Sequence record: OM339718.1
Direction: 5' to 3' (one strand)
DNA length: 64,000 bases
Below are positions 3,472 to 38,606 of the stretch, one piece after another (the stretch's first letter is position 1; every line of letters starts with the position of its first letter). The notes under the pieces were generated by a model, which was given only the letters and a program-made list of their open reading frames with translations, searched no databases and was not told the origin of the DNA. The position numbers and the translations under genes were made by a program.

Positions 3472-3476
3472 TTGAA

Positions 3477-3960: not shown

Positions 3961-3978
3961 GGGGATTCGTCCCCTTTT
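3959..3978 (+). terminator. Intrinsic terminator
   Basis: AAGGGGA-TTCG-TCCCCTT-TT. Confidence 0.8.
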
Positions 3979-3993
3979 ATCATTGAGGTATAA

Positions 3994-5997: not shown

Positions 5998-6000
5998 CAA

Positions 6001-6030
6001 AAAGGGAACCGATGGGGTTCCCTTTTCTTT
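6001..6030 (+). terminator. Intrinsic terminator
   Basis: AAAGGGAACC-gatgg-GGTTCCCTTT plus T-run, followed by an extended -10 TGTGTATAAT. Confidence 0.85.
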
Positions 6031-6067
6031 TTTATTGTGTATAATAGTGGAAAATAGAGGAATAATT

Positions 6068-6394
6068 ATGGCTAACCTAAATGATATCGCTCACTCAGTA
6101 AGACCTACAATCTCAATTGGAGACAAATCCACCGTGTGGTTTATCCGTGAAAAGCTTGTAGGGTGGTTTGAAGAAAGTGTAGAATACTGGCTTGAATGGT
6201 GTAAAGAAGATGGTATAGAACCTATCGAAGAGGTTCTAAAAGAAAATATGAAGCTTCTCAACGCAATAAAAACATGTTCTACAATCACAAAGAAAACTGT
6301 TGATTGGAAACTGGTTATGGGTTATGATGTTGACATTGATAAGCTTGCACTCGACTGGTTAGATCTATATCTTGACTATGAGGTTAAAAAATGA
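6068..6394 (+). CDS. Hypothetical protein
   Basis: GAGG SD before ATG 6068; the track's upstream extension crosses a terminator. Confidence 0.75.
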   Translation: MANLNDIAHSVRPTISIGDKSTVWFIREKLVGWFEESVEYWLEWCKEDGIEPIEEVLKENMKLLNAIKTCSTITKKTVDWKLVMGYDVDIDKLALDWLDLYLDYEVKK

Positions 6395-6663
6395 GTATGT
6401 ACAAATTCCGAAGTGACTATGAAAAAGAAGAGTTCATTTCTGTTGGTGAGGTTTTTCACGAATTTGAAGAGGATGGTATTAACTCAAACAAGTTAATCGT
6501 TGATTTTCTTAAAAAGACTGGTCGTGACGAATTTGAACTTGTGCCGTTTGTACCTGATGAAAAATACGTTATCGATTTAGAAGAAACTCCCGATGAACTG
6601 AAAGACTTGATCTATCATTTCAGCCAAGCTGACATCGAAAACTATCTTGTGGAGATTGAATAA
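6391..6663 (+). CDS. Small acidic protein, FKS-motif paralog family
   Basis: YKFRS..KEEF ... YLVEIE; similar to 6663, 38753 and 63337. Confidence 0.75.
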   Translation: MSMYKFRSDYEKEEFISVGEVFHEFEEDGINSNKLIVDFLKKTGRDEFELVPFVPDEKYVIDLEETPDELKDLIYHFSQADIENYLVEIE

Positions 6664-6950
6664 TGAACAAATACCGGTTTAAAAGTGAGAACCATAAACA
6701 GGAATTTCTGAATTCTTCGTGGGATTTTGAAGATGAGATGGAATTCAACTACAACGAATCCATCTGTAAATTCTTGGATATGGAAGGTATTGACGAATTT
6801 TATGTTGACGAAACAGAAGACCATCAGTATTGTATCCTAATCGAAGACGACGACGGGAATTTTGGAATCGCAGAAGTCATCCATATCGGTAAACCGCTTC
6901 TGTTCCACTTCTACCCAGAAGACGTACATCATTATCTCGAAGTAGTTTAA
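6663..6950 (+). CDS. Small acidic protein, FKS-motif paralog family
   Basis: YRFKS..KQEF ... YLEVV. Confidence 0.75.
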   Translation: MNKYRFKSENHKQEFLNSSWDFEDEMEFNYNESICKFLDMEGIDEFYVDETEDHQYCILIEDDDGNFGIAEVIHIGKPLLFHFYPEDVHHYLEVV

Positions 6951-6972
6951 AAGGTTAAATGAGAAATACATT

Positions 6973-9207
6973 ATGAAAATTGTTACAAATAAACAACCTG
7001 TATTTGGGACTGTTATGGAAGAGTCCCGCGATTTTGGTATGAAGTTTGATGAAAAAGCTTATACCATTCTTAGTTCTGGGCTTTATAAATTCAAGATCCG
7101 AGCTTTCATTCGTGAATTGAGCTGTAACGCAATCGATGGTCACATTGCATTGGAAAAGATTGGTGGAACCCCACCGAAATATTTTGATGTAGAGCTTCCG
7201 TCTGATATTAATTTGCAATGGAGACTCCGCGATTATGGTATTGGTATGGACAAGGATGGTATTTTCAACTTGTTCACCACATATTTTGCATCAACCAAGG
7301 AAGATTCTGACGATTTTATCGGTGCATTTGGTCTTGGTTCTAAAAGTCCGTTCTGCTACACAACAACATTCACTGTAACATCGTGGTGTAAGGGTCTCAA
7401 AACCGTCTATAGCATCTTCATGAACAACGGTATACCAAAGTGTGTCCCCATCTTCGAAGAACCGTCAGACGAGCCCACAGGTATCGAAATCGTAATCCCT
7501 ATCGATCAAGATGATATTACCGAAGTTCGGAATGAAGCTCGGGTGGTGTACCACACATTTGATAAAGATGGATTTTATCCAAACATCATCAATCAGAATT
7601 TCGAGTTGACTAACTACAAGTCATCTGGTTACTATGGTTCCATCATGGATAATGGCGTATATGCTGTTATGGGTGGTGTTTCTTACAAGATCCCAGCAAA
7701 GCTTTACGAAAATGAGGTTTGTTCGGTATTCTTTAATAATTCATATAACTTTATCGATTTTCCTGTTGGGTCTCTCAATCCTCTCCCGAACCGGGAAGAA
7801 TTGAGTCTTGATAAACACACACTGAATACACTGAATTCTTATTTTAAATCCCAATCGGACCAAGTTATTGATGAAGTCAATAAAAAGGTTTCTGAACATG
7901 GAAAGGATGCTCGAAGTAAAATTCATGCTATTTTGTCTATGGATTTTGGTGAGCATATCTTTAACAAAGTATCAAAGATTATTGACCATAACGGCAAGTC
8001 TCTTCAAGATTGGCGCTTCTTCTACGAAAGTATTACATCTTCGAAAGAATGGTCTTTGTTTAAAGATTTCTGTGTGGATTACAGTTATAAAAACAAAAAT
8101 TTCGTTTATATCGATACATTTAGTAATGCGGTGCGAAATGTTTGGAATCTTGAACGTGCAAGATATTACGGGTCGTCTCGTAAAATCGAGTTTAATGACT
8201 ATTTCATGCCGTCAGTAAAGAATAAGCGATATCCATTCCCAATCCTTCTGTCTAATATGGATGGTAAGTGGAAGGTAAGGATCAAGCTTCTTATGAAGTA
8301 TGGTATCATTCCTAATGAACGGGTTGTTGTTATGAGCGATTACCCTTATTCTCGCAAACCTTTCAAGAATGTAACTCGAAATCTCTTTATCCAGATTGCA
8401 AAGCGTTACCACAAAGACGATATCGATGTTTTTCATGTAGAGAAGTTGTATGATAAGCACGTTCAAGAAATTGAAGAGAAAGAAGCAGAAGAGAAGCGCC
8501 AACGTCGTTTAGAAGCACAGCGGAATAGGGCTAAAACTCCACGTTACAAACCAGACAACTCGCATTATTATAATAAAGGGTATCGCAGTACTGGCAATTT
8601 CCTTGCCAAGGATGTACACGAGCTTAGTGGGCTGTATGGTCTTCGTTCTGGCGAATATATTGTTGTTGATGGTCATGAAGTTACAGATGGACTTCAAAGT
8701 TGGTTATCTGAGATGTTTGATACAACGTTGTATGCATTTCCGAAAACCCTTGAACGACGGGCTAACATGAATGAGAATTTGACTCTCATTACAAAGGAAA
8801 TGATCAAAGGTAAACTTGTTGAATATCTCAATAACAATTTAAAGGGTAATAAAATTGGTTGGAATATCAATAGGTCTGATAAGCCAAGGGTCGATATGGA
8901 AATTACTCGGGAAATGAAGGACTATTTTGGTATCTCGGAATCCGGTGATTGGGATCATGATCTTGGTAATATTTATGTTCATGCTCAAGAATATTTGACT
9001 GAACATGAATATCAAGTTTATACCGATGTTGTTGAAAACCATCGTCAGAGTATGTATGATGTATATCATAATTTTTATGACGAAATGAAAAAGCAATTCC
9101 CCATGGAATGTGCGATTCTTAGGTTGAAGAAAAATTATAGTTGTGTAAAAAACGAAGAGTTCGAACTTGCAACTAAACTTATTATGGAAAACTACAAAGG
9201 GGTGTAA
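6973..9207 (+). CDS. rIIA: rIIA protein
   Basis: N-terminal HSP90-like ATPase IRELSCNAID, RDYGIGM, STKEDSDDFIGAFGLGSKSPF; 744 aa; precedes rIIB. Confidence 0.93.
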   Translation: MKIVTNKQPVFGTVMEESRDFGMKFDEKAYTILSSGLYKFKIRAFIRELSCNAIDGHIALEKIGGTPPKYFDVELPSDINLQWRLRDYGIGMDKDGIFNLFTTYFASTKEDSDDFIGAFGLGSKSPFCYTTTFTVTSWCKGLKTVYSIFMNNGIPKCVPIFEEPSDEPTGIEIVIPIDQDDITEVRNEARVVYHTFDKDGFYPNIINQNFELTNYKSSGYYGSIMDNGVYAVMGGVSYKIPAKLYENEVCSVFFNNSYNFIDFPVGSLNPLPNREELSLDKHTLNTLNSYFKSQSDQVIDEVNKKVSEHGKDARSKIHAILSMDFGEHIFNKVSKIIDHNGKSLQDWRFFYESITSSKEWSLFKDFCVDYSYKNKNFVYIDTFSNAVRNVWNLERARYYGSSRKIEFNDYFMPSVKNKRYPFPILLSNMDGKWKVRIKLLMKYGIIPNERVVVMSDYPYSRKPFKNVTRNLFIQIAKRYHKDDIDVFHVEKLYDKHVQEIEEKEAEEKRQRRLEAQRNRAKTPRYKPDNSHYYNKGYRSTGNFLAKDVHELSGLYGLRSGEYIVVDGHEVTDGLQSWLSEMFDTTLYAFPKTLERRANMNENLTLITKEMIKGKLVEYLNNNLKGNKIGWNINRSDKPRVDMEITREMKDYFGISESGDWDHDLGNIYVHAQEYLTEHEYQVYTDVVENHRQSMYDVYHNFYDEMKKQFPMECAILRLKKNYSCVKNEEFELATKLIMENYKGV

Positions 9208-9231: not shown

Positions 9232-10425
9232 ATGGAAACTATCCATATTGAAAAACTTGAAGCATTGATTCGTAGCGGTATTTACGATGTAACCGGTTAT
9301 AAAGTAAAAGAACTTGACAACAACAGAACTTTTGCATATTACAACCTAGACGATCTCGATGTTGTAGAACTTGTTATGTATATCGAGGAAGAACTTGATA
9401 TAGATCTTGGCGATCTCGATGTACTTGAAGGATGGGAAGCCCTTACAATTAAAGAATTGATTAAATTGATGGTTGGGACTAATAAAATCGATTTGCAATT
9501 TGATGTACATGATTATTCTGAAAATAAAGTCGAAGAAAGTCATGATGATAAAATTATCCGACTTCATAATCTCGGAATCAGCCAAAACGAAATTTCCCGT
9601 CAAACTGGTATCCCTCGTTCAACAGTAGGTGATGTAGTTCGTCGCTATAAGGGAATTCAGAAGAAGTCGGATAAAACAATCCATTTGAAGGAAATAATCG
9701 AACCGGTTCATACCCCCGTGGTATCTTGGAATGCAAGTTATGACTTTATTAACTGCTTCATTGATGGAACCCCATACGTTGCAGACCGAGCCCACCCACG
9801 GTTTGAAGATGCGTTTCAACTCCTGATCCGCGACAATGATGTGGTCGGTGCGGTAAACCTGATTTCTATCAAAGAAGCAATCAAAACCTATTCTTCTGGT
9901 GATATTCGGATTGAAGGCGACACACTCTACTATCGTGATATTGTTCTTGATACATCGATGACCCGAAGAATCATTGATATGTGGGCGTCCGGGGAAGAGT
10001 TTGAGTATATGGTTACCTTCCTGAAAAACCTGTTACAGAATCCGCGCCGTGCGGCTGTATACGAGCTTTTTGACTTCCTGACTCATAGTGACATCAAAAT
10101 CACCAACGATGGTCATTTCCTAGCGTACAAGCGCGTTACCGAGGATTATAAGGATATCCGCACCCACACGTTTGATAATAGTATTGGTTCTAAGCCACGA
10201 GTCGAGCCATTTGAGGTAGATGACGACCGAAACAATACTTGTGCTGCGGGTCTTCATGCTGCTGCTCGTCACTACATCCCATACTATTCATCTTGTGAGA
10301 ATGACCGGGTTGTGATGGTTAAGATCAACCCAGCCCACGTCGTTGCTATCCCAACTGATTACGACAATGCGAAACTTCGTACTTGGACTTATGAAGTAAT
10401 CTCAGACGTAACTCACGAGTTCTAA
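9232..10425 (+). CDS. rIIB: rIIB protein with N-terminal ACP-like domain and HTH
   Basis: C-terminal rIIB core (FLKNLLQNP, DGHFLAYKRV, CAAGLH, VKINPAHVVAIPTDYDNAKLR); HTH GISQNEISRQTGIPRSTV; N-terminal LDDLDVVELVMYIEEELDI. Confidence 0.9.
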   Translation: METIHIEKLEALIRSGIYDVTGYKVKELDNNRTFAYYNLDDLDVVELVMYIEEELDIDLGDLDVLEGWEALTIKELIKLMVGTNKIDLQFDVHDYSENKVEESHDDKIIRLHNLGISQNEISRQTGIPRSTVGDVVRRYKGIQKKSDKTIHLKEIIEPVHTPVVSWNASYDFINCFIDGTPYVADRAHPRFEDAFQLLIRDNDVVGAVNLISIKEAIKTYSSGDIRIEGDTLYYRDIVLDTSMTRRIIDMWASGEEFEYMVTFLKNLLQNPRRAAVYELFDFLTHSDIKITNDGHFLAYKRVTEDYKDIRTHTFDNSIGSKPRVEPFEVDDDRNNTCAAGLHAAARHYIPYYSSCENDRVVMVKINPAHVVAIPTDYDNAKLRTWTYEVISDVTHEF

Positions 10426-10427
10426 AT

Positions 10428-10447
10428 AAGGGGAGAAATCCCCTTTT
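10428..10447 (+). terminator. Intrinsic terminator
   Basis: AAGGGGA-GAAA-TCCCCTT-TT. Confidence 0.8.
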
Positions 10448-10530
10448 AACATATGAGAAAATCAAAATCAAAACATGAGTACATTGTGATATATAATGTT
10501 TATAACAAAACACATAAGGTACTTTAAATA

Positions 10531-11484
10531 ATGGCTATCAGTAATTACGAAACTGTCATCTCACAGATTGTCGAGATGAAAGAGAACAAGGGTATGGGTT
10601 CGCGAGCAATTGCGAAAGAACTTGGTATTTCTAAATCTTCCGTAAACTATTATTACGAGCGTTTCATGGAAGAGAACAATATTGTGGACGATATCAAAAC
10701 CGGTCCCCGTGTTCTAGTTCTGGATATTGAAACCGCTCCGATTATGGCTCATGTATGGCGCTTGTTTAAGACCAACGTTGGTCTGAATATGATCGAGTCC
10801 GATTGGTATATGCTTAGTTTTGCTGCTAAATGGTTTGACAGTGATGAAATCATTTATATGGACCAGCGAAATGCACCAAATATCGAAGATGATTCAGAAA
10901 TGCTGAAAGTTCTATGGGAGCTTCTTGACGAAGCTGATATCGTTCTTCATCAGAATGGTCGTCGGTTTGATATTCCAAAAATTCGCAGTCGTATGATCGT
11001 TCATGGTATGAAACCGTTCTCTACCGTGAAGCATATTGATACTCTTGAGATCGCAAAACGCACGTTTGGTTTTACTTCCAACAAGCTGGAATATATGACC
11101 GATAAGCTATGCACAGAAACCAAGAAATCTAAACATACTCAATTCCCCGGTTTTGAATTGTGGAAAGAATGCTTGGCTGGTAATATCGAAGCTTGGAAAG
11201 AGATGGAAGAATATAATATTGATGATATCGTATCTCTCCAAGAACTATATGTTAAATTGGCTCCATGGTCGGATCGTCTTCCGAACTTCTCTCTTTATAC
11301 AGATTCAGACAAATTCACTTGCGTATGTGGAAATCATGAGTTTGAAGATGCCGGGTTCGCGTATACCGAAGTTAGTAAGTTCAAACAATATAAATGCACC
11401 CACTGTGGTAAACACTGGCGTGGTCGCAAGAACCAAATCACTAAGATTAAGTCAAAACTTCTGTTGACTAATGCTCGTGAATAA
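10531..11484 (+). CDS. HTH + DnaQ/RNase H-like exonuclease + Zn ribbon
   Basis: GSRAIAKELGISKSSV HTH; VLDIETAP, QNGRRFDIP, YNIDDI; C-terminal CVCG...CTHC. Confidence 0.8.
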   Translation: MAISNYETVISQIVEMKENKGMGSRAIAKELGISKSSVNYYYERFMEENNIVDDIKTGPRVLVLDIETAPIMAHVWRLFKTNVGLNMIESDWYMLSFAAKWFDSDEIIYMDQRNAPNIEDDSEMLKVLWELLDEADIVLHQNGRRFDIPKIRSRMIVHGMKPFSTVKHIDTLEIAKRTFGFTSNKLEYMTDKLCTETKKSKHTQFPGFELWKECLAGNIEAWKEMEEYNIDDIVSLQELYVKLAPWSDRLPNFSLYTDSDKFTCVCGNHEFEDAGFAYTEVSKFKQYKCTHCGKHWRGRKNQITKIKSKLLLTNARE

Positions 11485-11495
11485 TAGTAAACTAT

Positions 11496-11522
11496 AGGGA
11501 ATCCTTCGGGGTTCCCTTTTTC
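11496..11522 (+). terminator. Intrinsic terminator, UUCG loop
   Basis: AGGGAATCC-TTCG-GGGTTCCCT-TTTT. Confidence 0.88.
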
Positions 11523-11538
11523 GTTATGAGGAAATAAA

Positions 11539-11832
11539 ATGGTTGATATGTTTGGTAATGAGCTTGTGGTCGGTGATTATATCGTCCACGGTATGGACAA
11601 CGGTTCTACCCTGTTATTGGGTCGTGTGTTCAAGCTAGGTGAGAAGAAATGTTGGTTCTACTATGTTCATAAGCATGAACAGGGGTACTATGAAATGTGG
11701 TTGAACAACCGTCATAACCGAGACTATGACAGAGTTGTTAAGTATACTGGTGATATCCATCTGATCAATAAAGGGTTGGGTGGTATTCGTGATGAAAATG
11801 GTAAATTGGTTGATCGATTTTTAGAATTTTGA
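11539..11832 (+). CDS. Hypothetical protein
   Basis: GAGG SD; DMFGNELVVGD SH3-like start. Confidence 0.75.
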   Translation: MVDMFGNELVVGDYIVHGMDNGSTLLLGRVFKLGEKKCWFYYVHKHEQGYYEMWLNNRHNRDYDRVVKYTGDIHLINKGLGGIRDENGKLVDRFLEF

Positions 11833-11839
11833 GGTGTAT

Positions 11840-12124
11840 ATGTTTAAATATAAAGTGTGGTTTGCGTCGGAAGAACAAAAAGCTGAAATGATCAGGTATA
11901 TAAATGAAGATGAGTTGGGACCTTGTAAAGTAGTTGTACCATATCTTGAAGAAATTGATGTTGGGGTGAAATATGATTTTGAATCAAATAAAAAACTAGA
12001 AACTTATTCTTATTCTGACGGGACGTTAAAAACCGTATTTAATGGGAAATATAACGATGGTATAAACCTCTTTATACCGGAAGATATTGACGATGGTCGG
12101 GTGTGTTGTGAGGCAATAGAATGA
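11840..12124 (+). CDS. Hypothetical protein
   Basis: GAGGTG SD before ATG 11840. Confidence 0.72.
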   Translation: MFKYKVWFASEEQKAEMIRYINEDELGPCKVVVPYLEEIDVGVKYDFESNKKLETYSYSDGTLKTVFNGKYNDGINLFIPEDIDDGRVCCEAIE

Positions 12125-12414
12125 AAATTTTTCAAGAATACAAAAACGGCAAGCTAATTGAAACCAAAGGCCCATTTTCTGTAATTCGGTGTAGTCGTTA
12201 TTATCTGGTTGCGGTTATTAACGGGGAGAAGATAGAACTAGGTCAGTGCAATGATTATGAAAAAACTTATAAAAAAGGTATTGACCAATGGATCTCTAAG
12301 GTGTACTCTAGGTGTATTGATACAGAAGCGAGTTACCGTTGGCAGGCTGAGAACCTTATCAAGCAAGCTGATGGAGAACGTGAGATTATTGAATTAATAA
12401 AATCACTGAGGTAA
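12121..12414 (+). CDS. Hypothetical protein
   Basis: ATGA overlap with upstream gene. Confidence 0.72.
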   Translation: MKIFQEYKNGKLIETKGPFSVIRCSRYYLVAVINGEKIELGQCNDYEKTYKKGIDQWISKVYSRCIDTEASYRWQAENLIKQADGEREIIELIKSLR

Positions 12415-12419
12415 TAATT

Positions 12420-12677
12420 ATGGATATGGTCGAATATTACGACTCTTTGGGTTGGAAACCTTTTCGTGAGTATATGTGTGATGTCATCTATATGGAATAT
12501 GATGCACAACTGGTGATTCGCACAAAAGATCTTGGAGAACCACCACATTATAAAGATGTCTTCCTTGTTACCTTAAACTGGGAACAGGGACACGGCAACA
12601 ACTGGTATTTTGAAACAGAAGATGGTTTGATTTTCAAGCCAGACGAAGTAAAAGAATTTTTGTTCGATTATAGTTGA
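12420..12677 (+). CDS. Hypothetical protein
   Basis: GAGG SD. Confidence 0.72.
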   Translation: MDMVEYYDSLGWKPFREYMCDVIYMEYDAQLVIRTKDLGEPPHYKDVFLVTLNWEQGHGNNWYFETEDGLIFKPDEVKEFLFDYS

Positions 12678-12701
12678 CTCCCATAGCCGTTAGATTATAA
12701 T
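12674..12701 (+). promoter_or_regulatory. Early sigma70-type promoter
   Basis: TTGACT-N16-TATAAT. Confidence 0.7.
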
Positions 12702-12731
12702 CATGGTTATCAACTGTTCTGAGGTAGTACA

Positions 12732-13298
12732 ATGAAAGTTTCATATGAATGCGATTACACCAGCTTTGAACATTGCAAAGGCGTTGACATTGTTGTTAAA
12801 CATTTCACAAAATTTGCGGTTGTTGCATCTAAAATAATCGACGATTCAAATATGGAACTTCTTGTTACTCAATATGAAGGGAACCAATACGAATTCTCTT
12901 TGTCCTGTGGAAAGAAACTCAGTATGATCCGAGTTGTTAACCTACGTACTGGTCATTATGAGCACGACACATTTTCCCTTGGGGAAGAATTCCAAGGGAG
13001 AGGACTTGTTAAACATATGTTCCGTTGTACTATCGACATATGCGAGGCACTTGGTATAACAAAAGTCGTTACGTCTGCGATTCTTGATGGTCGGATCGTA
13101 TGGTTAAAACGTGGATTTGTTCCTTTCTGTTGCGAAACCTATTTCAATCGACTTGAAAAGATGGGTGTTTGTGTTCCTGTGTGCGAACGGAATGAATATT
13201 GGTTCAATCAAGAAAATCTGAAAAAATACGAAAAAGAGGTTGCAGAAATCTCTTGGCATGGTTATGCTATGGTTGAAACTTTAAAACAATATGTATGA
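12732..13298 (+). CDS. GNAT-family acetyltransferase-like protein
   Basis: Motif A LGEEFQGRGLVKHM and motif B GRIVWLKRGF. Confidence 0.65.
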   Translation: MKVSYECDYTSFEHCKGVDIVVKHFTKFAVVASKIIDDSNMELLVTQYEGNQYEFSLSCGKKLSMIRVVNLRTGHYEHDTFSLGEEFQGRGLVKHMFRCTIDICEALGITKVVTSAILDGRIVWLKRGFVPFCCETYFNRLEKMGVCVPVCERNEYWFNQENLKKYEKEVAEISWHGYAMVETLKQYV

Positions 13299-28478: not shown

Positions 28479-29447
28479 ATGAGTGAATTGATTTTTGAGT
28501 GTGTGTTTGGATCTAAGTTGTATGGAACAGACACCCCAGAAAGTGATACTGATTATAAGGGTGTATTCCTCCCAGAACCACGACAGATCATCATGGGAAC
28601 AAAAGAGGTTTATCACAGGGATACCGGAGCTAAAGGGTCTGCGAACACGGCGGACGACATCGACCGAGAGTATTTTTCTCTGAAAAAGTTCATTCAAATG
28701 GCTTCTAAGGGGGAAACTGCGGCTATTGATATGCTTCACGCACCTATCGATAAAGTGATGACAAACTCCGAGATCTTCCAACATTTGCGAAACAACCGGT
28801 CTGATTTTTACACAACCAAGATGAAAGCTTATCTTGGTTATGTTCGTAAACAGGCAAGTAAGTATGGGGTTAAAGGGTCTCGTCTCCAAGAGCTTAATTC
28901 TGTGTTGTCTTTCATCGAGAATCGTCCTGTAAGCTTGTATGGGGATGACCGATTGGGTGGTCTTGTATCTGGTATGCCCCAGAGTGAAAACTTGATTATT
29001 GGTAAGTTTGTAGACCCCAGCCATCAGACCGTCTATTATTACGAGGTACTTGGTCGCAAATATCTGTTTGGGATCCGTTACTCTGAGTTTGTAGAACAGA
29101 TTATGAAGATCAAATCTGAATATGGGGCTCGGGCTGAAAAGGCTTCGTCTGGTATCGATTGGAAGGCGATGAGTCACGCAATTCGTGGTGCGGAACAACT
29201 TCTTGAAATTTACACAACTGGTGATCTTCAATTCCCCTTGAAAAATGCGGAATACATCAAGCTTGTAAAACAAGGTAAGTTGGATTTTTCAAAGGAAGTT
29301 CAACCGTACCTTGAGGATGTTATGGACCGAGCGGAGGCAGCGGCGGTAATCGCATCCAAAAACGGTATGCCCGATGAAGTAGACCACGATTATTGGAACA
29401 ATTTCATTTATGAATATTATGTAAACGAGGTAATTGAACGTGGATAA
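28479..29447 (+). CDS. Pol-beta-superfamily nucleotidyltransferase (T4 nrdC.11 / RlaP-like)
   Basis: FGSKLYGTDTPESDTDYKGVF, YLGY, WKAMSHAIR. Confidence 0.85.
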   Translation: MSELIFECVFGSKLYGTDTPESDTDYKGVFLPEPRQIIMGTKEVYHRDTGAKGSANTADDIDREYFSLKKFIQMASKGETAAIDMLHAPIDKVMTNSEIFQHLRNNRSDFYTTKMKAYLGYVRKQASKYGVKGSRLQELNSVLSFIENRPVSLYGDDRLGGLVSGMPQSENLIIGKFVDPSHQTVYYYEVLGRKYLFGIRYSEFVEQIMKIKSEYGARAEKASSGIDWKAMSHAIRGAEQLLEIYTTGDLQFPLKNAEYIKLVKQGKLDFSKEVQPYLEDVMDRAEAAAVIASKNGMPDEVDHDYWNNFIYEYYVNEVIERG

Positions 29448-30293: not shown

Positions 30294-30668
30294 ATGAAAA
30301 CAATAAAGCAGTCTATTATTGAGTCACTTGAAACCGCACTTGAAAATGATTTTACAAATTATAGACAAACTGCGGGTCTTTGTTCAAATATCTATTACGA
30401 CCTCAAGAAAAAGCAAAATCACATAATGCCAGATAAAACAAAATCTTTTGTTGGGACGATATACGCGATCCTTCAAGAGACTTTTGTTACTTGGCCTCAT
30501 TATTCTGGAATGCTGGGTTATCCTATTCCTTCTGGGTGTGGGATTAAACCTGACGTATTCTACAAGATGATGAGAAAAGACGCTGGTATGTATGATGGTG
30601 TTTATGGGGATTATAGGTATGATCTTGCTGAATGGATCATATCTGAATTGAAGAAAGATATAGGTTGA
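30294..30668 (+). CDS. Hypothetical protein
   Basis: GAGG SD. Confidence 0.72.
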   Translation: MKTIKQSIIESLETALENDFTNYRQTAGLCSNIYYDLKKKQNHIMPDKTKSFVGTIYAILQETFVTWPHYSGMLGYPIPSGCGIKPDVFYKMMRKDAGMYDGVYGDYRYDLAEWIISELKKDIG

Positions 30669-30703
30669 CATGTTCACGGTATAGGGAGATAATCCTTATA
30701 CCG
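30665..30703 (+). promoter_or_regulatory. Early promoter with -10 in a hairpin loop
   Basis: TTGACA-N17-GATAAT; CGGTATAGG/CCTTATACCG arms. Confidence 0.65.
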
Positions 30704-31155: not shown

Positions 31156-31836
31156 ATGAACCCATTTGTAAAATATGTACATCAGTACCTTCGTGGTGAG
31201 GTTGATGTATATAAAAACCCATATAACTATGTCCGGAAACCTCTTAACGGACGTCAGGCTGCGACATATACAGCTCGTATCCTAAACAAAAAATTCCTTC
31301 ATAATCTAATGAGGGAATATGGCCCACGAACTTCGTTTGATGTTTATGGTCATATTAATTATTCTTGTGATTTCCACCAACACTCATCAAAATCCGTTGT
31401 TATTAAAATTGGTAATGCAAAAAAATATCGAACTGGTGTGACTCGATATGTCCACCATCTTCTTACTACCGTAGCACAAGTAACAAACGGTTTGATGGTT
31501 GGAAAACTTAAAGTTCACAAGTCTAATGATGCTATCACGACTAATGGACGCCCTATCGGGAAGGAAGTCGAGTCTCATGTAGATTTTGAAATTCTCCTTG
31601 ACCTCAACATGTTATTTGGTGCGGTAGAACCATCTCAAGATATGAAAGAACAACATACATCTGTTTCTACACCATCTATTGAAGATGCATTCAAAGTTTT
31701 GAATGATGAATACAATCGCCTGAATGGTGAATTGACAAGCATCTCCAAAGAGATCAACGTCCTTACTGCAAAAGAAAAAGTCGCAAAAGAAAAACTGATG
31801 GAATTTAAATCTAAGTATACCAATTTCGGGGAATAA
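31156..31836 (+). CDS. Hypothetical protein with C-terminal coiled coil
   Basis: 226 aa co-directional ORF. Confidence 0.75.
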   Translation: MNPFVKYVHQYLRGEVDVYKNPYNYVRKPLNGRQAATYTARILNKKFLHNLMREYGPRTSFDVYGHINYSCDFHQHSSKSVVIKIGNAKKYRTGVTRYVHHLLTTVAQVTNGLMVGKLKVHKSNDAITTNGRPIGKEVESHVDFEILLDLNMLFGAVEPSQDMKEQHTSVSTPSIEDAFKVLNDEYNRLNGELTSISKEINVLTAKEKVAKEKLMEFKSKYTNFGE

Positions 31837-31838
31837 AA

Positions 31839-32249
31839 ATGAAAATCACGACTTACGCAAAGAAAGTTTTCAAAAACGAGATAGACGTTTTCGGTAATAA
31901 ACTGGGCTTCGGAAAATATAGCGGACTCCGATATCCATATGGAATGAACAAGTTTATCAATACCCTCCAACGTATGGTTCAAATGAATGAATATTATGAA
32001 CCAACTTGTCTCAATGGGTTTGATAAGCATGTATCAATCCAGATTAAGGATTTGGAACCAAATGACTTTGCCCCTGCGCGATGGGTCATTGTATTCCATC
32101 AGAAACCAGATTGTGGTGAGAAAATGATTGAACAACTATGTCGGATGGGTCGTTCTATTGAAAGTATGACCAAACAAGAGAATTTCGATATTGGAACAGT
32201 TGTTACCGGTGGGAAACTTCAATCTGTATCATTCGTTTTCTACAAGTAA
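31839..32249 (+). CDS. Hypothetical protein
   Basis: Co-directional. Confidence 0.72.
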   Translation: MKITTYAKKVFKNEIDVFGNKLGFGKYSGLRYPYGMNKFINTLQRMVQMNEYYEPTCLNGFDKHVSIQIKDLEPNDFAPARWVIVFHQKPDCGEKMIEQLCRMGRSIESMTKQENFDIGTVVTGGKLQSVSFVFYK

Positions 32250-32257
32250 GGGGTTGT

Positions 32258-32683
32258 ATGAAATTTATTATTCGGGTAAAATATAGAACTGGTGATAGTT
32301 TTAATACATATGATGACGAACGAATCCTAGCACCTGTTTGGTTTGACAACGACGATGCTATGAAGGCACTTGTTGAGATCTACGAGTTCAACGAGTTCTA
32401 CAATGCATACAACAACGAACGTTGGACACCAGCAAAACAGGAAATGGTTAAGGATCTGGCTTCTCGTCGTCCATGGGCCAAGGATACAGAAGACCCTTTC
32501 GATTTCTTCTCATCCATGAATATTCATCACTCTGATGGTAGGATCAAAATTGATATGGATTTCGTAACGGGATATTTCGAACACTTTGAAAGTGCAGAAA
32601 TTGAGGTTAAGATTGACAAGACCACAGATTATGGATACAGTGGTGGTTATGATGATCTGGTAAAGAAGTATGGCAATCATTGA
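32258..32683 (+). CDS. Hypothetical protein
   Basis: Y.TGDSF motif; AAGGGG SD. Confidence 0.72.
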   Translation: MKFIIRVKYRTGDSFNTYDDERILAPVWFDNDDAMKALVEIYEFNEFYNAYNNERWTPAKQEMVKDLASRRPWAKDTEDPFDFFSSMNIHHSDGRIKIDMDFVTGYFEHFESAEIEVKIDKTTDYGYSGGYDDLVKKYGNH

Positions 32684-33119
32684 CATCTATTCTGGGAGCC
32701 GGGATTGGATTGAACGTGAGTTGTCAAACTTCACAGAACACCCATTTACATTCGATGGTGTGTTTTATCGGACGATTGAGGCTTTCTTACAAAGCCTCAA
32801 ATATGAAAATCCCCCAGACATAAACACTCTGAGAGGTCATGAAGTTTATAAGGTTTGTCATTCTAATAGGGGGTGGCAGAAAGACCTTACCATGTGGTAT
32901 AAAGGAAAGCCTGTAAACCGCCTCAGTGAAGCGTATAGCAATCTTTTGTATAACGCATACCTTTCAATGGCAGAACAGAACAAATCATTCCTAGAGGCTC
33001 TGGTGCACTCAAAACCGCATGTATTGACCCATACTATGGGTTGTAAGGATCCACACCTCACAATTCTGACAGAAAAAGAGTTTTGTGACATTTTGAACGA
33101 GATTAGAGAACAACTTTGA
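32670..33119 (+). CDS. 30.3: NADAR-family protein, T4 gp30.3 ortholog
   Basis: LSNFTEHPFTFDG..IEAFLQSLK and LTHTM..TILTEKEFCDILN align with T4 gp30.3. Confidence 0.88.
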   Translation: MAIIDIYSGSRDWIERELSNFTEHPFTFDGVFYRTIEAFLQSLKYENPPDINTLRGHEVYKVCHSNRGWQKDLTMWYKGKPVNRLSEAYSNLLYNAYLSMAEQNKSFLEALVHSKPHVLTHTMGCKDPHLTILTEKEFCDILNEIREQL

Positions 33120-33514
33120 CCCCACATTCTGTTTTGTTCCGTTATCTTGACGGACTCCCCGTATCTGACGAAGAAGTTAAAATTCTTGTTGACTATGCAA
33201 AAGAAAAATTTAATAATAAACCGTGTATTTTGTATAGGTGGTCGTCTAAGAATCCACACGATGACCACACGATGAATAGCTTTTCTTCTTGTGCTAAAAC
33301 GGCTCGGTCTGTTGGATCATACTTCCAGAAGACAAACGATGGACACACATACGAAGTAGAAGCAGTTCCAGTCCTTTCAATCGATAACATCAGGTTCATG
33401 ATCCACAAGTTCTGTGATTATGAACCATATAAAAAGATTCTACTTAGGATCTTGAAACAGGAAGGGGAATACCTCGTCCTAAACTCTGATATAATTTCAA
33501 TGAGGATTATCTAA
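33116..33514 (+). CDS. Putative R-S-E-class ADP-ribosyltransferase
   Basis: LYR, SFSSCAKTA, YEVEA, QEGEYLV in canonical order; TTGA overlap with NADAR. Confidence 0.55.
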   Translation: MTPHSVLFRYLDGLPVSDEEVKILVDYAKEKFNNKPCILYRWSSKNPHDDHTMNSFSSCAKTARSVGSYFQKTNDGHTYEVEAVPVLSIDNIRFMIHKFCDYEPYKKILLRILKQEGEYLVLNSDIISMRII

Positions 33515-34311
33515 TGTATAAATTGTTTGTTACTTATAAAGACTTCAATATCAGTAATGCAATTGTTGATTTTAAACAGTTTGCCGGTGGGGAATGGAAC
33601 GTCAAACTTCCAAAAGATGTTATTGAATATGGGTCTTATGAGACAGAAACTGTTCGTGTTGATGCAAGTATCCACGATGGCGATATCATGAAACTGGCGA
33701 TCCTTACGGATGCACTTCACCGATTCTTCGGGACTGGTGTGCGATACGTTTTGGACCTTTCCTATCTCCCTTATGCTCGACAAGACCGAGTTATGACAGA
33801 AGGTGAAAGCCTGTCTTTGCGTGTCTTTTGTGATTTCATCAACTCTATGAAATATGATTTGGTTTGTCTCACAGACCCACATTCCGATGTAGCAACCGCA
33901 TTGATCAATAACGTATCTGTTAACAAACAGTGGTGTTGGGGTTCTCAAGGGATTTCCCGTCATAATTATGACGCAATCGTATCCCCGGATGCAGGTGCTC
34001 TGAAAAAGATTTATCCTCAAGCTCAAAGTGCGGGACTACCTGTAATTGAAGCCATGAAGACTCGTGACATCAACACTGGTGAAGTTAGCGAACCTCGTTT
34101 CAATGCTGACGTCAAAGGTAAGCGGTTGTTGATCGTAGACGATATTTGTGATGGTGGTCGTTCTTTCCTAAATCTTGGTAAAGTATTGAAAGAGTCTGGT
34201 GCGGTTCGAGTGGACCTGTTTGTTACCCATGGAATTTTTTCTTACAACGCCAAAGAAAACCTTGCACAGTACATCGACAACGTATATACTCGTTTCGACT
34301 GGACAAAATAA
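33514..34311 (+). CDS. PRPP-synthetase-like enzyme (likely NARP1 Adps)
   Basis: FAGGE, YLPYARQDR, DPHS, VSPDAGA, LIVDDICDGG. Confidence 0.9.
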   Translation: MYKLFVTYKDFNISNAIVDFKQFAGGEWNVKLPKDVIEYGSYETETVRVDASIHDGDIMKLAILTDALHRFFGTGVRYVLDLSYLPYARQDRVMTEGESLSLRVFCDFINSMKYDLVCLTDPHSDVATALINNVSVNKQWCWGSQGISRHNYDAIVSPDAGALKKIYPQAQSAGLPVIEAMKTRDINTGEVSEPRFNADVKGKRLLIVDDICDGGRSFLNLGKVLKESGAVRVDLFVTHGIFSYNAKENLAQYIDNVYTRFDWTK

Positions 34312-34321
34312 GGAACTAAAC

Positions 34322-34501
34322 ATGATGAGTATCGAAACTATGACCCAAATCATTAACTCCCGTATCGATGAACTTCTGGCTAACCAATCTGTTCAGGAAA
34401 TGTTGATGCGAGAAAAGGCGAATGGGATGAACGAAGAAGGGATCAAGAATCTTGTTCATAATCTGGCTATCGGTACTCTCTGTTTTGGAGAAAAGAAATG
34501 A
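34322..34501 (+). CDS. Small hypothetical protein
   Basis: AAGGA SD before ATG 34322. Confidence 0.65.
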   Translation: MMSIETMTQIINSRIDELLANQSVQEMLMREKANGMNEEGIKNLVHNLAIGTLCFGEKK

Positions 34502-34935
34502 TTAATTCAATTACATATGTATTGAAGAAAGAAGACTGTCACGAATCATATCAACCTATCACTATCAAGATCATTGGTGAAATTCCAATGGACGAAGTGA
34601 AAAAGGTACACCAAATCCGGATGTTTGACCGATATCATGACTGGTTCCGTTCGGAAGAAAATGATATCGAGATCATTGATACTGGTCGTGATACAATCGG
34701 TGATTATAAATTCATCGAGTATGATCTTAAAGATGGTAAAGTTTTGACCGTAGTTTTCTCTAAGCTGGTAAACCATGATCATATGGATGAATTTATTGGA
34801 CGTATCATTCATAAACGGCGGCTTGGTAGTAGCCTCGGTAGTTGTCGAGCTAAACGGGCTGGGTTTATTTGCGGCGAACGAAAGTTCGGAAAAAGTGAAT
34901 CTCTTCGTATTGACTATGAGGGGAACAAATTTTGA
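34498..34935 (+). CDS. Hypothetical protein
   Basis: ATGA overlap. Confidence 0.72.
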   Translation: MINSITYVLKKEDCHESYQPITIKIIGEIPMDEVKKVHQIRMFDRYHDWFRSEENDIEIIDTGRDTIGDYKFIEYDLKDGKVLTVVFSKLVNHDHMDEFIGRIIHKRRLGSSLGSCRAKRAGFICGERKFGKSESLRIDYEGNKF

Positions 34936-35123
34936 TGAATAAATGGCAAACCCCCGGACGGGTTATGACAAAAATAATCGACATTACGCTCGAAAATATT
35001 GGATATAATCTATCCGATTTGGTGGTACATTCTTACAAAGATGAAGGTGATTGCATTCTTGTAAACTTAGAGTTTAAGGAAGGTGGTGATCTGGTTGTTC
35101 AAAGAACAAGGTTGGTGTTATGA
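34932..35123 (+). CDS. Hypothetical protein
   Basis: Overlapping start. Confidence 0.55.
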   Translation: MMNKWQTPGRVMTKIIDITLENIGYNLSDLVVHSYKDEGDCILVNLEFKEGGDLVVQRTRLVL

Positions 35124-35662
35124 GAATTTATTTTATTGACAATATTCCTTATGTTGTAGAAAACGCCGACGGGGATGTTTCTGATTATGCGGAACTCCGT
35201 TGTCGGCTGGATCGGTTTACCATGTCAAGTAACTATGTGGTTGACTATAAAGATGATATTTTTGTTTTCATAAAAAATCGCTATTCGTCCGAAAAAATAG
35301 TTTTGTTTTCCTTCGATAGTGTGGTAGAGTATATTCAACAGTTTGAAGAGGAACCTGTTAGTAAATTCACCAGAATGGTAGGATTTGAAGATACCCCAAA
35401 AATCATCAATGAATACCGCAAAAAATTTACTTTTAAACCTAACGTGACCTCGATATACTACAAATCAGATAGACATCGGGTCGAATTTATGAGAGACCAT
35501 CGAAACATCGGTTGGCTTACTGCGATTGATAATTTTGTGATGGATGGGCAGGTTTGTAAAATTTGTGATGATGGTTCTGTAAATTTTGTTGACGTTAAAA
35601 CAGAAACAACGTATTCTATGAGAAAAGATACGTTAGAAAAATACTTTACCCAAATTATGTAA
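35120..35662 (+). CDS. Hypothetical protein
   Basis: ATGA overlap. Confidence 0.72.
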   Translation: MRIYFIDNIPYVVENADGDVSDYAELRCRLDRFTMSSNYVVDYKDDIFVFIKNRYSSEKIVLFSFDSVVEYIQQFEEEPVSKFTRMVGFEDTPKIINEYRKKFTFKPNVTSIYYKSDRHRVEFMRDHRNIGWLTAIDNFVMDGQVCKICDDGSVNFVDVKTETTYSMRKDTLEKYFTQIM

Positions 35663-35678
35663 TAAGGAAAATGAGAAA

Positions 35679-37205
35679 ATGAAATATCCGCATATGTCCG
35701 TAGACTTCTACAAATGGGGTCACATCGATCAATACATCAACGGTACTGAACTTGTAATCTCCAACCTAACCCCTCGTTCTGACCGTCTGGCTAACACCAT
35801 TCACGGCAACGGTAAGATGGTATTCTTCGGTCTGCAATACACCCTGCAATACATGGTGGAGCAATGGGATCAGAACTTCTTTAGTAAGTCTAAAGAGAAA
35901 GTAGTCAAGCGGTTCTCTCGTCGTGTCAAGAACTCCATCGGTAAAGACCATGGCGATTCCATGATTAAGGCTATTGGTGACCTTCATGACCTTGGTTATC
36001 TGCCTATTGAAGTGCGAGCAATCGAAGAGGGTAACTGGATTAACATGGGTATCCCTGCTTTCGTAGTGAGTAACACCAAGAAAGAGTTCTTCTGGTTGGT
36101 TAACTACCTCGAAACCTTCCTGAGTGCGATGGTATGGCCTATGAGCAACTCCGCTATGGTATCTGCTCAATACCGCAAGACCTCCAATAAGTGGGCTCCG
36201 ATGACTGGTGCAGACGACTTCTGGACTCTGATTGCTAACCACTGTTTCGCCGCTCGGGGTCATCGTGGTATTGAGGATGCTACCATCTCTGGTATGGGTC
36301 AACTTCTGTTCAGTGCTGGTACTGACACCGGTTGGGCTATCGATTACATCGAAGACTATTACGGTGCTAATAGCGACGAGGAACTGATTGGTTGTTCTGT
36401 TAACGCCTTCGAACATGCTACCGCAACCCAACGTATCGCTTACTTCCGTGGTCTTGGTTTTGAACATGCAGAACGTGAAAGCCTCCGCCGTCTTTTCACA
36501 GAAACTTATCCGACCGGGATCCTGAGTTACGTTGCGGATAGTGAAGATTATTATCGTCTGCTGTCGGTTGACCTTCTGGCACTGAAAGACGAAATCGAAG
36601 CCCGTCAACCGGATTCAAACGGTCTGTGTAAGTTTGTAGTTCGCCCAGACAGTTCCCCCAAGACTCCTTACGAGGTGATCATGGGTGACCCGGAAGCAGA
36701 AGATGAGAACGAACGTAAAGGGTCTCTGCAAATCCTGTGGGATATTTTTGGTGGTACTGTGAACGAGAAGGGTTTCCGTGTTCTGAATCCGAAAGTTGGT
36801 ATCATCTACGGTGAAGCGATTGACGGTGAACTGCAAGAAAAGATCTATGCTGGTATGGCTGCTGCTGGCTGGTGTGTTTCCAACGTACTGATGGGTACTG
36901 GTAGTTGGGGTTTCCTCAAGAATGCTTCTCGCGATAGCTTCTCTATTGCAATCAAGGGTACTCACTCCATCGTTGATGGAATTGATATCTCCATGCAGAA
37001 GAACCCGAAAACTGCGTTGAACAGTAAGAAGTCCGCTCGGGGTCGTCTGCGGGTTGAGAAGGTTGATGGTGATTATGTTCTTTTCGAGAACCAAACCGCT
37101 GATGAGTTCAACCAAGGCGAATTGAAACTTGCTTTCCGTGACGGTAAGATTGTTAACTTCCAAATCTGGAAAGACATCCAAGCTCGTGCGCTGGCTGGTC
37201 TGTAA
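35679..37205 (+). CDS. Nicotinamide phosphoribosyltransferase-like enzyme (likely NARP1 Namat)
   Basis: DFYKWGH..QY, FFGLQY, GYLPIEV, FAARG, AFEH, VRPDS, RDSFSIAIK. Confidence 0.92.
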   Translation: MKYPHMSVDFYKWGHIDQYINGTELVISNLTPRSDRLANTIHGNGKMVFFGLQYTLQYMVEQWDQNFFSKSKEKVVKRFSRRVKNSIGKDHGDSMIKAIGDLHDLGYLPIEVRAIEEGNWINMGIPAFVVSNTKKEFFWLVNYLETFLSAMVWPMSNSAMVSAQYRKTSNKWAPMTGADDFWTLIANHCFAARGHRGIEDATISGMGQLLFSAGTDTGWAIDYIEDYYGANSDEELIGCSVNAFEHATATQRIAYFRGLGFEHAERESLRRLFTETYPTGILSYVADSEDYYRLLSVDLLALKDEIEARQPDSNGLCKFVVRPDSSPKTPYEVIMGDPEAEDENERKGSLQILWDIFGGTVNEKGFRVLNPKVGIIYGEAIDGELQEKIYAGMAAAGWCVSNVLMGTGSWGFLKNASRDSFSIAIKGTHSIVDGIDISMQKNPKTALNSKKSARGRLRVEKVDGDYVLFENQTADEFNQGELKLAFRDGKIVNFQIWKDIQARALAGL

Positions 37206-37214
37206 AAATAGAAA

Positions 37215-37235
37215 GGGGTTGCGTATTGCAACCCC
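37215..37235 (+). terminator. Hairpin after Nampt-like gene
   Basis: GGGGTTGC-gtatt-GCAACCCC; no T-run on +. Confidence 0.45.
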
Positions 37236-37264
37236 AACACAACTAAACTAAAAAGGTTAATATA

Positions 37265-37552
37265 ATGGCTAAGATGAATAAAGAACAAACTGCAAAATTT
37301 AATTCACTGTTTGAAGATACCCTGAATTGGGGCGATGGTAGTACTTGTACTGGGTTGTTTGATTGTCTGGGTGGTCCAAACCTCGGTTATCTGGCGACTG
37401 AGATAGACGGGGACGATTTGCAGATTTTTGAATTTACTGGTTCTTACTGGGAATTCTTGGGTTCTATGCCTATTAACTCAAAGACAAAAGCGAAGTTCAA
37501 AAAGATTGTTCTCCATCTGATGGATAAAGATTTCGATACTCTGGAATTTTAA
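37265..37552 (+). CDS. Hypothetical protein
   Basis: AAGG SD. Confidence 0.72.
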   Translation: MAKMNKEQTAKFNSLFEDTLNWGDGSTCTGLFDCLGGPNLGYLATEIDGDDLQIFEFTGSYWEFLGSMPINSKTKAKFKKIVLHLMDKDFDTLEF

Positions 37553-37555
37553 ATG

Positions 37556-37594
37556 AAAAAAGGGTTGACTTGGGTCAGCCCTTTTTGTTATTAT
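37556..37594 (+). promoter_or_regulatory. Terminator hairpin containing the -35 of the next promoter
   Basis: AAAAAGGGTTGAC-ttgg-GTCAGCCCTTTTT; TTGACT-N18-TATTAT. Confidence 0.68.
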
Positions 37595-37625
37595 ACACCC
37601 ACATAATGTTGTAGGGGATTTTTAA

Positions 37626-38606
37626 ATGCTTGGTACTGTATGTATGACTGGTATTTTCGATAAGTCTAAATCAACTTTTACCGCTCATAAAGATACAAAA
37701 ATGGGTACGGTTACCAGAAAAAGTATGATGCAGATATGTGGGATTGACGACCCGTCACTCCTTACATTGGATGTGGTATCTAAAAATTCTATTAAACTAA
37801 AGGCAAAGCTGATGCCTAAAGTTAAACAAAATCTAAATGCTTTGTACAACCAACTGGTTTTTGTGTCTGGTATGCCAACTGAATGTCATGCTCTGCGGAT
37901 TAGTTCAGATCTACTTCCGTTGTTTGACCACCCAGTGTTAGGGTCTCTTTACGATGTGGATATGTTATCCGCTGTGGACATGTTGCTAAATCGTTGCAAA
38001 AAAGTAATAGATTCAAACGGTATCGTGATATCTACTCACCCGGACCAGTTTGTTATCATCAATTCTGTCGGTGAAGATACCAGAAATCAATCTTTTGCTA
38101 CCCTCATGTATCACAAATATTTTATGGAACGGTTGACTACATCAGATAAATCTTGTATTAATATTCATCTTGAAGGCAACTTAGATCATCTCCCAGAACT
38201 TGATAATGGTCAATATTCGGATCTTATTCCTTGGCTCTCATTTGAGAATAGCGATAAAAACGGTAAGATCTTCACGGGGGACACTCAAAATACGTTGCTT
38301 ATTTGTGAAAAATATGGTATAAAAATGTTGTATGACTGTCATCACCATCTTGTTATGACCGGTGAATTTTTGGATGTTGATTCATCTACGTTTGAACGAA
38401 TCCTTTCCACTTGGAGAAACCAAAAACCGTTTTTCCACGTTTCACAAAGCCGTGAAGTAGACAAAGTATCCCGCGCACATAGCGATTATATTGATGATCC
38501 TATGGTCATCCAACAAGCTAAAATCCTGTCTGGTTTGGGTTGTCTAGAAGTTGAAGCGAAAGCAAAAACATCTGCTGTACTGGATTTATTTTCAAAAATT
38601 GGTTGA
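37626..38606 (+). CDS. uvsE: UV damage endonuclease (UvsE/UVDE family)
   Basis: RISSDLLP, STHPDQF, NIH, FEN, YDCHHH, FHVS, HSDYI, EVEAKAK. Confidence 0.9.
   Translation: MLGTVCMTGIFDKSKSTFTAHKDTKMGTVTRKSMMQICGIDDPSLLTLDVVSKNSIKLKAKLMPKVKQNLNALYNQLVFVSGMPTECHALRISSDLLPLFDHPVLGSLYDVDMLSAVDMLLNRCKKVIDSNGIVISTHPDQFVIINSVGEDTRNQSFATLMYHKYFMERLTTSDKSCINIHLEGNLDHLPELDNGQYSDLIPWLSFENSDKNGKIFTGDTQNTLLICEKYGIKMLYDCHHHLVMTGEFLDVDSSTFERILSTWRNQKPFFHVSQSREVDKVSRAHSDYIDDPMVIQQAKILSGLGCLEVEAKAKTSAVLDLFSKIG

Follow-up and report, generated by a model that had tools for sequence, protein, structure and literature searches.

A predicted AdfN-type NADAR gene and a predicted NARP1 gene pair in one early-gene block of Aeromonas phage P19

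The gp30.3 protein of phage T4, AdfN, acts as a DNA ADP-ribosylglycohydrolase of the NADAR fold that T-even phages need in order to resist DarTG1 and that suffices for this resistance; its residues E36 and K43 are indispensable, and the RB69 protein is inactivated by truncation of its C-terminus (LeRoux lab 2024, bioRxiv 10.1101/2024.07.11.602962). A second module, the NAD+ reconstitution pathway NARP1 (Osterman et al. 2024), comprises the enzymes Adps and Namat. Adps of Vibrio phage Gary has been functionally validated, the structure of ICP1 Adps has been solved and roles assigned to its residues (PMC13586617), and structures are available for SpbetaL1 Namat (PDB 9W5X/9W5W; PMC12774641). NARP1 operons also recruit producers of free ADP-ribose, namely the Macro phosphatase Adpp (NARP1-AP) and the RyR-domain cyclic ADP-ribose glycosidase RyDEP. 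Finally, NADAR genes of phages that produce NAD+ themselves have been described near NadV and NadM, and those of T4-like phages among the early genes, together with ADP-ribosyltransferases (ARTs) (Iyer, Burroughs, Anantharaman and Aravind 2022, PMC9503650). Here we analysed a 64,000-nucleotide window of Aeromonas phage P19 (sequence record OM339718.1), in which a predicted AdfN-type NADAR gene, a gene for a 132-aa protein and putative adps and namat genes follow each other on one strand.

An earlier note on this DNA had proposed that the four genes form a closed unit that writes, erases and recycles ADP-ribosylation. Our analysis points in another direction. The block probably represents two known counter-defence modules, an AdfN-type NADAR and NARP1, juxtaposed in the early-gene block of a T4-like phage, together with an optional candidate mini-ART. 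Correspondingly, we lean towards a lineage-specific juxtaposition, and away from a dedicated four-enzyme writer/eraser/recycler system. Over the 5.3 kb from 32258 to 37600, the sequence matches Aeromonas phage P19 (OM339718) and phage vB_AdhaM_G2 with 100% identity; the CC2, AS-zj and AS-szw group follows with 93-97% and Aeromonas phage 65 with about 76%. P19 and its relatives belong to the T4-like phages (Straboviridae, Emmerichvirinae) and have genomes of about 230 kb.

The predicted NADAR and NARP1 genes

The assignment of the first gene as a NADAR stood up well. Its product belongs to the AdfN/gp30.3 family, matching Pfam Phage_30_3 (PF08010) with an E-value of 2.5e-33 and 115.3 bits (cut-off 36), and is about 40% identical to T4 AdfN. 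Aligned with Escherichia coli YbiA and the proteins of T4 (gp30.3) and phage 65, the P19 protein has E37 and K44 in the places of E36 and K43 of T4 AdfN, which are invariant across T4, phage 65 and YbiA, and its C-terminal helix is of full length. As in T4, the gene is an early gene of a T4-like phage. Going by family membership and the conserved catalytic residues, the P19 NADAR would cut ADP-ribose from guanines modified by a DarT1-like toxin, which would free the phage DNA and release ADP-ribose; the experiments behind this role are those on T4 AdfN.

The gene neighbourhood differs from that of T4. There, gp30.3 lies far from NAD+ salvage genes with no NARP1 beside it and is followed by 30.2, 30.1 and the ligase gene, whereas in P19 the 132-aa open reading frame (ORF) and adps follow. 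In T4, too, the NADAR gene is translationally coupled to an uncharacterised gene, with 30.3 (adfN) overlapping 30.2 by 4 nt (locus L005, 7308-7311); the 30.2 product has 278 aa (phrog_420), and the ART gene alt is located four genes beyond 30.2. Tblastn retrieved 1,512 phage records with a gp30.3-type NADAR, T4-like phages with few exceptions, and this NADAR is a common accessory gene of T4-like phages. Unlike the NADARs of DarT-NADAR toxin-antitoxin pairs, the P19 NADAR has no paired DarT gene: neither a DarT toxin nor another defence-system model was matched near it by PADLOC or Pfam. A further difference from such pairs is that the NADAR is retained in the related phage Aswh_1, which has no 132-aa gene.

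The PRPS-like and Nampt-like genes, which the earlier note had compared with the NARP1 pair, are indeed best read as adps and namat. P19 Adps is 38-42% identical to the Adps proteins of Vibrio phages Gary and ICP1. In the pairwise alignment, its residues K182, D209, D210 and I211 correspond to K185, D212, D213 and I214 of ICP1 Adps, the stretch C212-D-G-x-x-S217 keeps most of the ICP1 PP loop, and F18 and R87 of ICP1 are retained as F23 and R89. P19 Namat is far closer to SpbetaL1 Namat (9W5X/9W5W; E-value 3e-96) than to human and bacterial Nampt (about 1e-37), and it matches phrog_448 with an E-value of 1e-169. Of 86 surveyed loci with Adps, 85 also had a Namat homologue. Based on the Namat match, the Adps homology with its conserved catalytic residues and this survey, we assign the P19 pair to NARP1, a pathway that has already been described. 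By the same homology to characterised enzymes, Adps would move pyrophosphate from ATP to ADP-ribose to yield ADP-ribose pyrophosphate (ADPR-PP), which Namat would join with nicotinamide to form NAD+, thereby countering Sir2, TIR and other NADase defences.

As in described NARP1 loci, both genes lie on one strand within one early block. The putative P19 pair is different in that 1.37 kb (1,368 bp) with four unrelated small ORFs separate the two genes; among the surveyed loci, adps and namat are directly adjacent in 44 of 85, and an insert of 150-2,500 bp is found in 39 of 85. The set of ORFs between the two genes varies across related phages, and we treat the four P19 ORFs as probable variable passengers. 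They gave no credible Pfam match (the 180-aa ORF has a sub-threshold Gelsolin match), and sequence searches with the 145-aa and 180-aa ORFs returned no match in the PDB. Ten ORFs from such inserts elsewhere yielded a Pfam match in three cases (an HNH endonuclease, a weak radical-SAM and a weak cupin match). Between adps and namat of Aswh_1 lies, on the opposite strand, an ORF of 320 aa (L091, 6013-6975, minus strand) whose annotation points to similarity with CC2 gene 068; it may be a mobile insertion.

The 132-aa gene between NADAR and adps

The gene following NADAR is a real gene of a very small family. Its TTG start is credible since the first 18 residues are conserved in homologues of 61-80% identity and can still be recognised in those of about 30%. 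Tblastn retrieved 19 records, all from Aeromonas phages. A word-indexed search of 5.8 billion proteins and an exhaustive HMMER search of 1.84 billion representatives together added only a handful of relatives; the family amounts to about eight sequences in 1.8 billion representatives. The HMMER search gave a close relative (P0001) and three informative ones (P0004, P0005 and P0007), of which P0005 (197 aa) and P0007 (147 aa) are distant homologues at about 30% identity. In viral and metagenome contigs, only close relatives were found as further members. A polyubiquitin match to the family was spurious, being caused by repeats.

The proposed ART identity of this protein starts from its motifs. 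R41, S55, S57, E116 and E118 are the only polar residues that are invariant in all intact members, including P0005 and P0007, which read S-T-S and E-x-E at the motif sites. The order of the motifs and their local contexts are shared with T4 ModA, ModB and Alt: a hydrophobic-Y-R (LYR) motif, S-[TF]-S, and E-x-E followed by a hydrophobic strand, as in T4 ModB and Alt. The Ser-to-Glu spacing is alike as well, with 61-99 residues in the family against 71-72 in ModB and Alt. Aligned by hhalign with a ModA/ModB alignment, the family places the three motifs in register over 99 columns, at a P-value of 0.047 and a probability of 1.1%. Of 300 column shuffles, 3 scored at least as high, compared to 23 of 300 shuffles by block, in which the local motifs are kept; the local motifs therefore explain most of it.

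On the other side, the protein has 132 aa compared to 200-207 aa in ModA, ModB and Alt, and its Arg-to-Ser spacing of 13-15 residues is 11-12 residues shorter than the 25-26 of ModB and Alt. None of eight family members matched a Pfam ART family even at an E-value of 10, including PF26816, the Pfam family precomputed for ModB relatives, and neither the single 132-aa sequence nor a profile found an ART in the PDB. AlphaFold2 gave an unusable model from a four-sequence alignment (mean predicted local distance difference test score, pLDDT, 48.5) and a better one from an eight-sequence alignment (pLDDT 67.3; predicted template modelling score 0.64). Foldseek searches with the latter model returned best E-values of 1.8 (PDB) and 0.4 (BFVD), and no ART was among the matches. 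Homologues of ModA, ModB or Alt were found neither in the window nor in the fetched loci. Two more specific comparisons were also made: hhalign gave nothing for T4 gp30.2, the overlapping neighbour of 30.3, as a homologue of the 132-aa protein, and with Alt alone as template, the sole match was local, confined to the LYR motif and not significant.

Together, R/S-x-S/E-x-E motifs and a marginal profile alignment stand against the missing fold or homology match, and they do not establish the ART-like identity that the earlier note had given to this gene. The ART reading is a lead, not a finding. By its motifs, the 132-aa protein may be a very small ADP-ribosyltransferase for host take-over; that it is an active ART has roughly an even chance or somewhat less. 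Another possibility, which we regard as doubtful but serious, is that it is a non-enzymatic protein, a small anti-defence or host-take-over binder such as an inhibitor or decoy, in which the Ser and Glu residues would be structural or binding residues and the likeness to ARTs coincidental. Such a role would suit a small protein encoded by an optional gene of so narrow a family for which homology and fold searches gave no ART; moreover, about 4% of ORF segments with a length of 100-250 aa contain a loose R..SxS..ExE pattern. A stricter, context-aware motif, however, was found in only 2 non-family ORF segments out of 2,445, and at about 30% identity the only polar residues to stay invariant are precisely these R, S and E residues, which argues against coincidence.

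We then consider the linkage of this gene to its neighbours. The four ORFs of the earlier note, starting at 32670, 33116, 33514 and 35679, are all present on the plus strand, and so are the two overlaps it had reported: TTGA, where the 132-aa ORF starts with TTG at 33116 and NADAR stops with TGA at 33117-33119, and TAATG, with the stop TAA of the 132-aa ORF at 33512-33514 and the adps ATG at 33514. The overlaps are thus real, but as the mark of a special unit they fail. In phage G2, which is nearly identical to P19, 38 gene junctions are annotated in the 17 kb around the block, and neighbouring genes overlap by 1-14 nt at 17 of them; such coupling is typical of the T4-like early-gene block and adds no information.

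The order NADAR, 132-aa gene, adps is kept in the P19/CC2 type, the 65 type and metagenomic relatives. Phage Aswh_1, a member of the same subfamily, shows a different arrangement: adps follows NADAR after 17 bp, namat is kept, other ORFs lie between adps and namat, and there is no trace of the 132-aa gene (best hidden Markov model E-value 1.9). In the available contig flanks of the distant homologues P0005 and P0007, neither NADAR nor adps nor namat was found. Within 10 kb of 77 other IMG/VR NARP1 loci, neither a gp30.3-type NADAR nor a 132-aa homologue occurred (0/77). In the record of phage 65 (L002, NC_015251) the 132-aa homologue is split over two frames (6935-7340), while it is intact in 65.2, avDM6 and a metagenomic contig; in the same record, namat is annotated as two coding sequences (9549-9674 and 9688-11079). 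Genuine decay could explain these split ORFs, as could sequencing errors, the record being an old one. Directly upstream of a distant 132-aa homologue lies a metallophosphoesterase-type gene (L003, 7365-7874; phrog_547), and genes of this type are also located upstream of NARP1 in phage Gary (L011, 4271-4834) and in the IMG/VR locus L081 (9025-9714).

The findings on Aswh_1, the distant homologues and the NARP1 loci indicate that the 132-aa gene is an optional, lineage-restricted insertion and that the four genes form no conserved system. This bears directly on the closed unit of the earlier note, in which the 132-aa ART would write ADP-ribosylation, NADAR would erase it and Adps and Namat would rebuild NAD+ at no net NAD+ cost. 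The gene order with its tight junctions, the invariant residues in their ModB/Alt-like contexts, the in-register hhalign match and the order kept in two phage types and metagenomic relatives speak for such a unit. Against it stand the ART searches that returned nothing, the score reached by block shuffles, the short Arg-to-Ser spacing, Aswh_1 with NADAR, adps and namat present and the 132-aa gene missing, the distant homologues with neither NADAR nor NARP1 nearby, the split copy in the phage 65 record, and AdfN itself, which functions in T4 without such a partner. We consider the closed unit unlikely. Its most specific form, a new minimal R-S-E ART family of about 130 aa that lacks the Arg-to-S-x-S strand segment and that would act with the co-translated NADAR and with Adps and Namat in an NAD+-neutral circuit, seems very unlikely to us.

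NADAR beside NAD+ reconstitution genes in other phages

Seen from the preferred reading, a juxtaposition of two known modules, the question is how closely NADAR and NARP1 belong together. The predicted product of NADAR, ADP-ribose, would be the substrate of Adps, and the action of DarT would free nicotinamide. As these products match the substrates, NADAR and NARP1 could act in series and regain the NAD+ spent by a DarT attack. Such a serial link is plausible by analogy with the NARP1 feeders Adpp and RyDEP: as in NARP1-AP and RyDEP operons, Adps and Namat have an ADP-ribose-processing enzyme beside them that would release free ADP-ribose. The difference is that the P19 accessory is a NADAR and not a Macro or RyR protein, and its feeding role is drawn by analogy. 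No Macro or RyR Pfam match was obtained among the ORFs from 31156 to 37552, and no Macro, RyR, SLOG, Nudix or cREC domain was found in the surrounding ORFs.

Taken further, NADAR might be a dedicated NARP1 accessory in an extended NARP1, which would supply Adps with ADP-ribose cut either from ADP-ribosylated guanine of DNA or from a soluble N-glycosidic derivative. NADAR is the nearest upstream module of adps in all three Aeromonas phage lineages, and the locus L081 (IMGVR_UViG_3300045919_000631, 9902-13262) carries, in order, adps, a Nuc_deoxyri_tr2 gene (SLOG-like, PF15891), an unrelated NADAR (PF08719) and namat; judged by its domain matches, it appears to be an independent case of a NADAR within a NARP1 operon. 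The metallophosphoesterase gene just upstream of this four-gene set is a weak Metallophos_2 match. In four further viral contigs (L099-L102), a Nampt-like gene is followed about 1 kb downstream by a relative of the L081 NADAR. In L099, the one of the four examined further, an NMNAT/Nudix-like gene, a Nampt-like gene, a 175-aa ORF and NADAR follow each other (2899-6495), an arrangement that looks like a NARP2-type set with a NADAR. Besides the precedents Adpp and RyDEP, the NADARs next to NadV and NadM noted by Iyer et al. 2022 (PMC9503650) fit this idea as well.

Wider counts argue in the opposite direction. With E. coli YbiA as seed, a PF08719-type NADAR was found within 10 kb of adps in 5 of 77 other loci, which by a rough estimate, not computed and based on the NADAR frequencies in PMC9503650, is roughly the number expected by chance for large myoviruses, many of them NADAR carriers. 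Of the roughly 80 NARP1 loci, those with a directly adjacent NADAR fall into two independent lineages. NARP1 of the T4-like phage Acj9 is located between genes 41 and 61, and that of the Felixounavirus JH2 adjoins rIIA; the NARP1-flanking ORFs scanned in both phages include no NADAR. Conversely, about 1,500 phage records contain a gp30.3-type NADAR, among them that of T4, where gp30.3 has no NARP1 beside it. We regard a dedicated accessory role of NADAR as rather improbable.

Some of our observations do not sit easily with a mere juxtaposition of modules and an optional gene, and they weigh against it. The adjacency of NADAR and adps is kept across three diverged Aeromonas phage lineages, one of which has no 132-aa gene, which hints that the pairing is under selection and not just a matter of co-residence. 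In the 132-aa protein, the five polar residues that never vary form exactly an R-S-E catalytic signature in the right order, which keeps a writer function among the possibilities. The serial link, in turn, may contribute too little to matter: the sites modified by DarT are few against the bulk loss of NAD+ to NADases.

The earlier note had not known the four-enzyme linkage as a described system. Neighbourhoods of NADAR with phage NAD+ salvage genes, and of NADAR with ARTs, were described in 2022 (PMC9503650), in work that predates NARP1 and hence reads NadV as a classical Nampt. Neither the 132-aa family nor the gp30.3-adps arrangement of Aeromonas phages was found mentioned in PMC9503650, where the one mention of Aeromonas phages refers to an ART-ARG pair. 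The expectation that a neighbourhood survey would find the linkage conserved in other phages was largely contradicted for the ART-like gene, and only partly so for NADAR with NAD+ salvage genes.

Layout of the block and what it would mean

The genes of the block all lie on the plus strand and are closely packed (Table 1). Missing from the earlier note were the four ORFs between adps and namat and the overlap of the NADAR start with the ORF upstream. This 141-aa ORF is kept upstream of NADAR in all three Aeromonas phage lineages and had no match in Pfam or in a sequence search of the PDB.

Table 1 Predicted features of the early-gene block of phage P19 (positions in the window)
Feature	Coordinates	Strand	Remarks
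Best promoter-like site on the plus strand	30665-30693	+	consensus match only
141-aa protein, phrog_10176, no assigned function	32258..32683	+	overlaps NADAR start by 14 nt
AdfN/gp30.3-type NADAR, predicted DNA (guanine) ADP-ribosylglycohydrolase, predicted anti-DarT1	32670..33119	+	PF08010
132-aa protein, phrog_18982, no assigned function, TTG start	33116..33514	+	candidate minimal R-S-E ART
Adps, predicted PRPS-like ADP-ribose pyrophosphokinase, NARP1 step 1, 265 aa	33514..34311	+	PRPS Pfam domains, phrog_619
59-aa ORF, phrog_17159, no assigned function	34322..34501	+	in related Aeromonas phages including Aswh_1
145-aa ORF, phrog_8320, no assigned function	34498..34935	+	absent from Aswh_1
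63-aa ORF, phrog_1873, no assigned function	34932..35123	+	phrog match
180-aa ORF, phrog_24164, no assigned function	35120..35662	+	only in P19/CC2-type phages
Namat, predicted nicotinamide ADP-ribose transferase, NARP1 step 2, 508 aa	35679..37205	+	PDB 9W5X/9W5W match, phrog_448
95-aa ORF	37265-37552	+	before terminator-like hairpin
Terminator-like hairpin, 13-bp stem	37557..37586	+	consensus match only; 3' of 95-aa ORF

The hairpin at the end of the block is likely the 3' end of the early transcription unit, and together with the upstream promoter-like site it would enclose about 14 genes. The total counts of promoter- and terminator-like sites did not exceed the shuffled expectation, so that these boundaries are merely suggested. 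A promoter-like site (TTGACT, 18 nt, TATTAT) overlaps the 13-bp-stem hairpin (37557-37594 in the window), and a G+C-rich hairpin with an 8-bp palindrome is located at 37215-37235, 10 nt past the namat stop. The section from 36001 to 38000, which falls on namat and its 3' flank, has the highest G+C content of the window (0.442 compared to about 0.36-0.41 elsewhere), which would be consistent with a horizontal acquisition of namat. Applied to the block, PADLOC returned generic phosphoribosyltransferase-domain matches for Adps and a weak, non-credible restriction-enzyme match for the 132-aa protein. Further out, a gene for a UvdE-type UV-damage endonuclease (37626-38606; PF03851, E-value 4e-31) lies downstream of the block, and one for a nucleotidyltransferase of the RlaP family, a family of RNA-repair pathways, upstream (28479-29447; PF10127).

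NAD+ and ADP-ribose are among the main things that bacteria and their phages fight over, and for now the main value of our analysis is an accurate annotation of the P19 gene block. Should transferase activity be shown for the 132-aa protein, it would rank with the smallest known ARTs and be a new phage tool for host take-over or counter-defence. If NADAR does feed NARP1, it would represent a third kind of ADP-ribose supplier after Adpp and RyDEP, and defence by DarT-type DNA ADP-ribosylation would be linked to the salvage of NAD+.

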